NCBI GenBank assembly: GCA_044892505.1 | Contig: CM097882.1 | Coordinates: forward strand, 604,128,001-604,192,000 | Direction: 5' to 3' | Length of the DNA: 64,000 nt | DNA from: Schmidtea nova | Lineage: Eukaryota | Shown: piece by piece, positions 46,323-46,553 of the stretch | Layout of the letters: every line of letters begins with the position of its first letter | How positions within the stretch are numbered: position 1 is the first letter of the stretch | The notes under the pieces: generated by a model | The model's database searches: none | What the model was told of the DNA's origin: nothing | What the model saw: only the letters and a program-made list of their open reading frames with translations | Translations under genes and position numbers: made by a program

Positions 46323-46553
46323 TGCTGGTGTGTTGGTTAGTTGTTCAACTGAGATCCTGTTTGATTTTATGTGTTAGGGTGATCTCGCCAACATAAAAAC
46401 ATCCCCCCGCTGACACCCATGATGTATCCCTAACTACTCATCATGTTGGTACTGTGTCAACGTTGTGAAATGACAAGGCAGGTGAGCAACCTTACGGCTA
46501 CTATTCCATTGTTTATTCACGGGTCCACCACTACCGTTAGAAGGTTTATGTGG
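46323..46553 (-). ncRNA. Structured RNA element, copy L (multi-helix, GNRA hairpin, kissing loop)
   Basis: See finding; at least six helical segments show compensatory changes versus 21368-21602. Confidence 0.65.

Follow-up and report, generated by a model that had tools for sequence, protein, structure and literature searches.

In complex retroviruses, the Rev response element and its partner Rev, and the constitutive transport elements of retroviruses, determine the fate of the viral transcript through a structured RNA (PMC4488727, PMC4829213). In the Rev system, the RNA measures a few hundred nucleotides, forms several stems and is located towards the 3' end of a transcript that contains introns; its partner is a small accessory protein with an Arg-rich RNA-binding block. 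Packaging and dimerisation signals of retroviruses and of elements with long terminal repeats (LTRs) are located in the 5' leader downstream of the primer-binding site (PBS) and carry self-complementary loops. Non-LTR retrotransposons of the R2 type, represented by a family in Rfam, have repeated units whose very 3' end is a structured RNA of about 200-250 nt. In insects, the 3' untranslated regions (3'UTRs) of the maternal bicoid and oskar mRNAs form large branched structures with localisation and dimerisation elements, and ENE (element for nuclear expression) or triple-helix elements clamp the poly(A) tail in viral, long non-coding RNA and transposon transcripts.

Here we describe a structured RNA encoded on the minus strand of a 64,000-nt stretch of Schmidtea nova contig CM097882.1 (positions 604,128,001 to 604,192,000, in the following called the window, to which all coordinates refer). 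It is present in two diverged copies, copy L of about 231 nt (46323-46553, minus strand) and copy S of about 235 nt (21368-21602, minus strand). Its fold is kept by selection and matches no described family, and both copies are linked to a small coding unit, at its 3' end.

A minus-strand RNA fold kept by selection

The two copies lie in like orientation 25 kb apart, are 80% identical across the element and share three domains with 60 consensus pairs. An initial annotation of this stretch had listed seven sets of pairing segments whose differences between L and S maintain the pairing, and all seven are present in the sequence at the positions it had given. Folded separately, L and S adopt near-identical minimum free energy (MFE) structures sharing 57 pairs (70 in L, 73 in S). 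In the RNAalifold consensus of the two copies (60 pairs), eight two-sided changes keep the pairing, two one-sided changes are wobble-compatible and no pair is broken. As RNAalifold selects compatible pairs by construction, we judged the MFE structure of L alone in the sequence of S instead. Thereby 53 of the 70 pairs were found to be the same in S, three show one-sided wobble-compatible changes, eight are compensatory, five are broken and one falls on a gap. All five broken pairs sit at helix ends.

In a permutation analysis, the 64 substitutions were re-dealt among columns with the same L base in 20,000 trials. These trials broke 21 pairs on average; five or fewer broken pairs were obtained in 0/20000 trials, and eight or more compensatory pairs occurred with P = 0.0004. 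When only the substitutions of paired columns were re-dealt, the observed numbers of broken and of compensatory pairs were reached in 0/20000 trials each. Counting pairs in the 5' 151-nt domain gave 100% paired cells with seven compensatory pairs; sliding the 3' partners by 1-3 columns as a control left 31-52% of the cells paired and 0 compensatory pairs. The covariation comes from two sequences, a number that permits no R-scape-type statistic. The preservation of pairing noticed in the initial annotation goes far beyond chance in both the permutation and the slid controls, and chance as the source of the pairing is essentially excluded. The RNA is very likely functional.

Domain 1 of copy L (46525-46553), delimited by the pair analysis, is a hairpin in which CCAC/GUGG encloses an inner stem and a 7-nt loop. 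The inner stem reads ACC/GGU in L and GCU/AGC in S, corresponding to two compensatory pairs. Domain 2 (46405-46523) is formed by a CCC/GGG closing helix and two arms and contains five compensatory pairs. Its arm A carries an invariant 7-bp hairpin, AGUAGCC/GGUUGCU, which includes two G-U pairs and is capped by the GNRA loop GUAA in L (46485-46502) and GCAA in S (21534-21551). This hairpin is flanked by an invariant internal loop of 3 nt on one side and 6 nt on the other (AAU / CACCUG). Arm B contains an invariant 8-nt bulge and carries the first kissing loop. In domain 3 (46323-46393), a UGUUGG closing helix is combined with two hairpins, AGAUC/GAUCU with a loop of 24 nt and the small GUUG/CAAC. 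The closing helix is ambiguous: UGUUGG pairs either with CCAACA, as given in the initial annotation, or with CCAGCA a few bases further, as given by RNAalifold, and both partners are invariant. Like domain 1, domains 2 and 3 are all read on the minus strand.

The loop of arm B is complementary to a loop of domain 3. The 5' partner of this loop-loop pairing is GUUAGGG in L (46428-46434) and AUUAGGG in S (21476-21482), the 3' partner CCCUAAC in L (46373-46379) and CCCUAAU in S (21420-21426), all on the minus strand. The pairing thus comprises 7 bp in L and in S (shuffle P ~0.01 each) and contains one compensatory exchange of G-C to A-U, in agreement with what had been proposed for these loops. 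The loop sequences are complementary to each other, not self-complementary. In the spacer preceding the RNA there is an invariant ACCCUAGA octamer (46598-46605 in L, 21646-21653 in S, minus strand), whose CCCUA could pair alternatively with the UAGGG in the first kissing loop, in competition with the 3' loop.

The invariant G-U pairs, the one-sided changes, the GUAA/GCAA loops and the better consensus energy and z-scores identify the minus strand as the RNA strand, as the initial annotation had assumed. On this strand, 8 of the 120 pair cells are G-U, with invariant G-U pairs among them, two of these in the GNRA hairpin. Only the minus strand tolerates the two one-sided changes. The opposite strand folds worse, with an alifold energy of -48 versus -56 kcal/mol and z-scores of -0.2/-1.6 versus -2.5/-3.7.

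The whole window was compared with the 4227 models of Rfam 15, resulting in 0 matches at gathering thresholds. Among these models are the hammerhead, hepatitis delta virus (HDV)-like, twister, pistol, hatchet, hairpin and Varkud satellite (VS) ribozymes, internal ribosome entry sites (IRES) and exonuclease-resistant RNAs (xrRNA), as well as the signal recognition particle RNA (SRP), RNase P/MRP, small nuclear RNAs (snRNAs), 7SK and the R2 element. With E-values up to 10, only scattered chance matches of 15-19 bits appeared near L and S, differing between the copies and lying off the helices of the element. No ribozyme model matched even at this level, consistent with the earlier remark that the hammerhead, HDV, twister and pistol cores are not recognisable here. 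A third copy was not found in the window by BLAST, by a covariance model of the 151-nt 5' domain run with filters off, or by tblastn with the neighbouring reading frames. The covariance model recognised only L and S; its weak, spurious matches fell on an unrelated family of inverted repeats resembling miniature inverted-repeat transposable elements (MITEs) at 37900-38551, 39527-39872 and 50395-50730.

Exact patterns of the invariant core gave 0 and 0 matches in viral contigs. A pattern match in a metagenome contig was rejected as chance because it lies inside a bacterial protein gene (381-aa reading frame) with only a 23-mer in common. Three pattern matches in prokaryotic genome contigs were rejected, too; their number is about the chance expectation for a gapped pattern and none of them was recognised by the covariance model. 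The bacterial contigs L001, L003, L004 and L005, derived from metagenomes or metagenome-assembled genomes, show chance matches to short core patterns of the RNA and are unrelated to the element. A literature search found no described equivalent.

The coding unit and its 3' end

The homology between L and S is wider than the RNA. Self-comparison of the window aligned 46317-46873 with 21363-21938 at 70% identity over 583 bp, and showed this homology at no other place. In both copies it runs unbroken from the end of an open reading frame (ORF), ORF-B, via a spacer into the RNA, which starts about 170 nt past the ORF-B stop in each copy. Broken down by segment, the identity is 80% for the RNA, 62% for the end of ORF-B, 60% for the poorly conserved spacer and 52% for the next 200 nt downstream, the last value being background for the composition. 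The RNA is therefore the best conserved segment of the L/S homology.

ORF-B of copy L (46723-47280, minus strand) comprises about 186 codons with one in-frame stop, and its last 60 codons are common with S. The corresponding frame of copy S (21785-22087, minus strand) has no stop over 100 codons; its alignment with L is confined to the C-terminal 60, and S contains no full-length equivalent of ORF-B. Over the last 60 codons the amino-acid identity is 68% versus a nucleotide identity of 61%. The differences are distributed over codon positions 1/2/3 as 20/11/40; the nonsynonymous rate (dN) is 0.28 and the synonymous rate (dS) is saturated and too large to estimate. The higher identity of the protein compared to the DNA, the excess of third-position changes and the dN/dS pattern together mean that ORF-B is or was a real gene. 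As judged from this pattern, it is a real coding sequence, and the L and S lineages diverged long ago.

The most conspicuous part of ORF-B is an Arg-rich block, RTKRxNRLGAKRRRERRAYAER (46807-46872 in L, 21872-21937 in S, minus strand), with 11 R/K in 22 residues. It is present in both copies, with 21 of the 22 residues identical, and is thus nearly invariant despite saturated synonymous sites.

Copy L alone contains a further reading frame upstream, ORF-A (47537-48109, minus strand, 190 aa), which is longer than chance allows (P ~0.005). Further copies of ORF-A or ORF-B were not detected in the window by tblastn. Both copies are damaged: L has the one stop in ORF-B, and S is without ORF-A and without the N-terminal half of ORF-B. 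The L unit forms a GC-richer island (46300-49500, minus strand) of 35-55% GC within DNA of 16-30% GC, and its minus strand is A-rich throughout. The shorter S unit forms an island, too (21300-22500, minus strand), with flanks of 8-20% GC and an A-rich sense strand. There is a weak indication that S is without internal sequence and not merely 5'-truncated.

Inspection of the minus strand of L by eye revealed a TATA-like/initiator-like region near 49150-49172, a GT donor (GTATGT) at 49058-49059 after a short leader and a strong polypyrimidine-AG acceptor at 47278-47282, exactly before the start codon of ORF-B. Splicing at these sites, if they are used, would remove ORF-A. Just upstream of ORF-A lies a 105-nt purine/U-rich stretch that is nearly free of C (48145-48249, minus strand); weaker C-poor stretches follow ORF-A and ORF-B and precede the frame of S. 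As a signal specific for the unit, C-depleted purine-rich stretches were rejected, only 48145-48249 passing a strict filter.

Searches with the proteins of the unit, which together spanned billions of proteins, revealed no relatives. For ORF-A no homologue was found in a word-indexed protein search, in viral contigs, in Pfam or in the PDB, and the only match of a full HMMER search, to a repeat protein, was spurious. A single-sequence AlphaFold model of ORF-A reached a mean predicted local distance difference test (pLDDT) score of 31 and was unusable for a fold search. The two pieces of ORF-B were searched separately and never joined, the shorter one against Pfam only. The word-indexed search gave no homologue of ORF-B among proteins of 0.55-1.75 times the query length, the range that it covers, so that a longer relative may exist. 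No homologue was found in viral contigs, with either the single sequence or the alignment of L and S, nor in Pfam or the PDB. Neither ORF-A nor either piece of ORF-B contains a Pfam domain at E-values up to 10, including reverse transcriptase and endonuclease domains.

On the other side of the RNA, the L/S homology stops 5-10 nt past the last helix in both copies, at hexamers resembling poly(A) signals. In L, these are two overlapping AUUAAA hexamers (46307-46317, minus strand) and in S an AAUAUA (21363-21368, minus strand) preceding a GU-rich run; GU/U-rich runs follow the hexamers of both copies. The hexamers probably represent poly(A) sites. The RNA thus occupies the last stretch of the repeated unit on its 3' side, the position that characterises the 3'UTR elements of non-LTR retrotransposons. 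Since the copies share only the 3' end of a small ORF, the spacer and the RNA, we regard the RNA as a 3'-terminal 3'UTR element of an orphan unit. A function as IRES, one of the roles suggested in the initial annotation, is unlikely because no conserved ORF follows the RNA.

Proposed function and alternative explanations

The explanation we favour, tentatively and with somewhat less than even confidence, is that this structured RNA acts in cis at the 3' terminus of a small orphan transcription unit, which is probably mobile or virus-derived and not an ordinary host gene. In copy L, the unit would comprise a leader, ORF-A, ORF-B, the spacer of about 170 nt, the RNA and a poly(A) site, with transcription and polyadenylation predicted from these features. 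Its RNA would be organised as a 5' hairpin, a two-armed domain with the invariant GNRA-capped hairpin and a 3' domain, and the 7-bp loop-loop pairing would tie domains two and three together or could join two molecules. Such a structure may be a protein-recognition platform deciding on the export, packaging, copying or stability of its own transcript. The most likely ligand would be the invariant Arg-rich block at the C-terminus of ORF-B. It is the leading candidate because strong conservation between the copies is limited to this block and the RNA.

In the choice between a mobile or virus-derived unit and a host gene, we lean slightly to the former, because the copies have been under selection in the past and yet each of them is damaged, because they form compositional islands in transposon-rich DNA, and because their proteins are orphans. 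Several points weigh against our explanation. Only two copies are known, both in one window. The unit is not marked as mobile by terminal repeats, target duplications or enzyme genes, and we found in it no feature diagnostic of a known class of transposon or virus. Upstream, the similarity of L and S is marginal and gives no clear 5' boundary. The transcription of the unit is deduced from sequence features, the connection between the Arg-rich block and the RNA is suggested by their co-conservation, and the Pfam and PDB searches with ORF-B returned no named RNA-binding protein. Finally, most of the facts would also fit an ordinary pair of fast-evolving host genes whose 3'UTR is regulatory.

In its layout, the unit resembles Rev and its response element. 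Here, too, a multi-stem RNA of a few hundred nucleotides would lie in the 3' part of a possibly intron-containing transcript beside a small Arg-rich protein; the Arg-rich end of ORF-B and the RNA are co-conserved, and donor- and acceptor-like sites surround ORF-A in L. In contrast to the Rev system, the unit is without gag-pol-env, neither the sequence nor a model gave a match, and ORF-B has no named match in Pfam or the PDB. The resemblance is a likeness in layout and not membership, and splicing, binding and export are predictions drawn from this analogy. A comparable situation is found for the 3'UTR elements of R2-type retrotransposons. With them the RNA shares its size of 200-250 nt, its location at the extreme 3' end of a repeated unit, a fold better kept than the sequence and copies that vary in the 5' sequence they retain. 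However, no reverse transcriptase or endonuclease domain precedes the RNA according to Pfam, and Rfam gave no match. Like ENE elements, the RNA is located just upstream of a putative poly(A) site of a possibly mobile transcript, but it has no conserved U-rich internal loops, its internal loops being AAU / CACCUG and AGUACCAA-type, and no Rfam match was obtained in this case either. The single U-run of L (U5) is located in a linker and is not kept in S, which has U3 there.

The best surviving alternative is that the RNA is a regulatory 3'UTR element, acting in localisation, stability, translation control or mRNA pairing via its loops, of a fast-evolving host gene family with L and S as old paralogues. 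We consider this possible, without regarding it as probable. The shared orientation of the copies at a distance of 25 kb, the codon-position bias marking ORF-B as coding, the poly(A)-signal-like hexamers at the end and the lack of transposon hallmarks in our searches are all compatible with a host gene, and the promoter-like, donor and acceptor motifs seen by eye in L would give a spliced gene of host type. However, the supposed intron does not fall below the exons in GC content and contains an ORF of 190 codons, a length hardly expected by chance. ORF-B is broken in L and truncated in S, no homologue was found in any of the protein collections searched, and the unit lies in a transposon graveyard. 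The 3'UTRs of bicoid and oskar offer a parallel, as they are large and branched and contain two complementary loops able to pair within or between molecules; however, no homology to them exists, the gene considered here is an orphan and both of its copies are damaged.

The initial annotation had regarded L and S as two diverged retroelement copies, had noted a PBS about 200 nt downstream of the RNA and had named a packaging or dimerisation signal among its possible roles. On this view the RNA would be part of an LTR retroelement and lie in a long LTR (U3/R). The window contains exactly two occurrences of the 12-mer taken for the PBS (45436-45447 and 46106-46117). The first one follows the 5' LTR of a complete Ty3/Gypsy element of 4.0 kb (41593-45592, minus strand) located next to L. 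This element has identical 144-bp LTRs (41593-41736 and 45449-45592), a TTTAT target duplication and ORFs for gag (DUF7041) and for pol with protease, reverse transcriptase, RNase H and integrase (PR-RT-RNaseH-IN), gag and pol overlapping in different frames. It is nested in a degraded relative with a gag remnant at 40752-41042. The second 12-mer (46106-46117, minus strand), identical to the PBS of the Gypsy element, belongs to this degraded LTR element and is not part of the RNA unit. A short LTR candidate of 162 bp (46121-46282), with TG..CA ends and TATA-like and AAUAAA-like motifs, may lie between the RNA unit and this PBS; a second copy of it was not found. Directly upstream of the PBS-like 12-mer, a small hairpin with a GAAA tetraloop is found (46125-46150, minus strand), which is absent beside S.

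A location in an LTR would be in line with the GC-richer island of L, which extends past the PBS-like 12-mer and reaches into the leader of the degraded element, and with the succession of a poly(A)-like signal, about 190 nt, CA and PBS, the spacing of which resembles an R/U5 layout. We nevertheless regard this explanation as improbable. A search of the window for the 12-mer found no PBS within reach of S, and the DNA downstream of S is not LTR-like (P 0.59 in comparison with the Gypsy LTR). Between the end of the L/S homology and the PBS lie about 200 nt. The window contains no second LTR copy of the unit, and the 162-bp candidate, which resembles the 144-bp LTR of the neighbour in its layout, would be self-sufficient between the RNA and the PBS. 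According to the covariance model, the intact Gypsy neighbour carries no copy of the RNA. The closest relative of its pol elsewhere (64% identity), a whole element on a 4,080-bp ENA metagenome contig (L002), is without such an RNA as well. Named relatives of this pol, from flatworms, arachnids, ants and nematodes, show about 40% identity.

Two variants of this explanation were rejected. That both copies are followed by an LTR is not borne out by the comparison of the downstream sequence of S with the Gypsy LTR given above, nor by that of the downstream sequences of L and S with each other (P 0.075). L and S cannot be the two LTRs of one old insertion, as their differences show selection on coding and on pairing. 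Known packaging and dimerisation signals resemble the RNA in having stem-loops with kissing potential and a retroelement-rich setting. They differ from it in that the RNA of L lies upstream of the PBS of a neighbour, possesses two different, mutually complementary loops in place of the self-complementary loops typical of dimer initiation, and is absent from the Gypsy element and its relative. Since the PBS is absent at S, the homology stops short of it and the Gypsy relatives are without the RNA, the PBS is a neighbour of L and not part of the unit. What stands of the initial interpretation is the minus-strand RNA itself, which is conserved, comprises several helices including a GNRA hairpin and has a loop-loop pair; its assignment to a retroelement and its relation to the PBS are not supported. 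The RNA should consequently not be annotated as part of the Gypsy/LTR element.

Alternatively, the RNA might represent a new class of catalytic RNA, self-cleaving or other, with a role in processing the transcript of the unit at its 3' end, which appears very doubtful to us. Its position at the very 3' end would suit such a role, as would a compact fold that combines a GNRA loop and invariant internal loops with a loop-loop contact over a long distance, and the invariant unpaired AAU / CACCUG and the 8-nt bulge of arm B may point to tertiary or active-site functions. However, invariant loops are expected equally for protein binding, no cleavage site is marked in the sequence, and the Rfam ribozyme models gave no match at E-values up to 10.

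We give just as little credence to a separate non-coding RNA gene whose position next to ORF-B would be incidental. The RNA is far better conserved than its surroundings, as would be expected of such a gene. However, the homology continues from the end of ORF-B through the spacer into the RNA, no conserved promoter-like block precedes the RNA and no shared T-run terminator follows it in the two copies, and no known class of small RNA in Rfam was matched. The idea that there is no functional RNA, and that the pairing reflects chance or a DNA-level feature such as palindromes maintained by repair or a hairpin terminating a DNA element, may draw on the small number of two sequences and on the ability of both strands to fold to some degree, but it is most improbable in view of the permutations (0/20000), the slid controls with 0 compensatory pairs, the many short helices of 3-9 bp in a branched layout instead of one palindrome, and the invariant G-U pairs and GNRA loops that make sense in minus-strand RNA only.

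Genomic surroundings and significance

The window consists of very AT-rich DNA full of transposon remains, comprising Polinton-type polB ORFs, pieces of Ty3/Gypsy elements, tandem arrays and MITE-like inverted repeats. Runs of N are located at about 3660-3680 and at 3945-4211. Two ORFs encode protein-primed DNA polymerases B of the Polinton/Maverick type (79-2997, plus strand; 12448-15840, minus strand), with weak Endonuclease VII-like matches. They are in opposite orientation and show about 66% DNA identity over 2.1 kb. Tandem arrays comprise a 120-bp array at 18224-20200 and two arrays of about 145 bp belonging to one family (16971-17997 and 34730-35889). A large palindromic repeat cluster is situated near the end of the window (60402-61980).

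A stretch of 4,161 bp is duplicated at 100% identity (23723-27883 and 52208-56368). One of the copies lies between identical 441-bp LTRs (51780-52220 and 56371-56811). The other one has only 13 bp of the LTR and runs into a Gypsy-type pol remnant consisting of several ORF pieces (26999-30062, minus strand). The duplicated stretch holds an antisense ORF for a RING-finger protein (23565-24833, plus strand). This duplication is either a very recent duplication or recombination event or an assembly artefact.

Apart from the classic non-coding RNAs, nuclear genomes of eukaryotes rarely encode large RNAs that have tertiary structure and covary cleanly. The RNA described here has been kept more strictly than the adjoining orphan Arg-rich protein, to which it is coupled, over a divergence that saturated the synonymous sites. 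A more far-reaching reading would be an invertebrate mobile or virus-derived unit that has independently invented a module of its own small Arg-rich protein, the C-terminus of ORF-B, and a response element of ~235 nt whose fold contains a GNRA hairpin and is locked by the kissing loops, or else a new class of catalytic RNA for 3'-end processing; taken together, we consider these unlikely, though worth keeping in mind. If the former were true, the module would act like the pairs of accessory protein and response element in complex retroviruses, without kinship in sequence. If the RNA is merely the 3'UTR of a lineage-specific gene, it would still be an unusually well-defined structured regulatory element. 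Should further copies confirm the fold, it would constitute a new RNA family, and it may open the way to an unseen type of mobile or virus-derived unit or to a new protein-RNA control pair.

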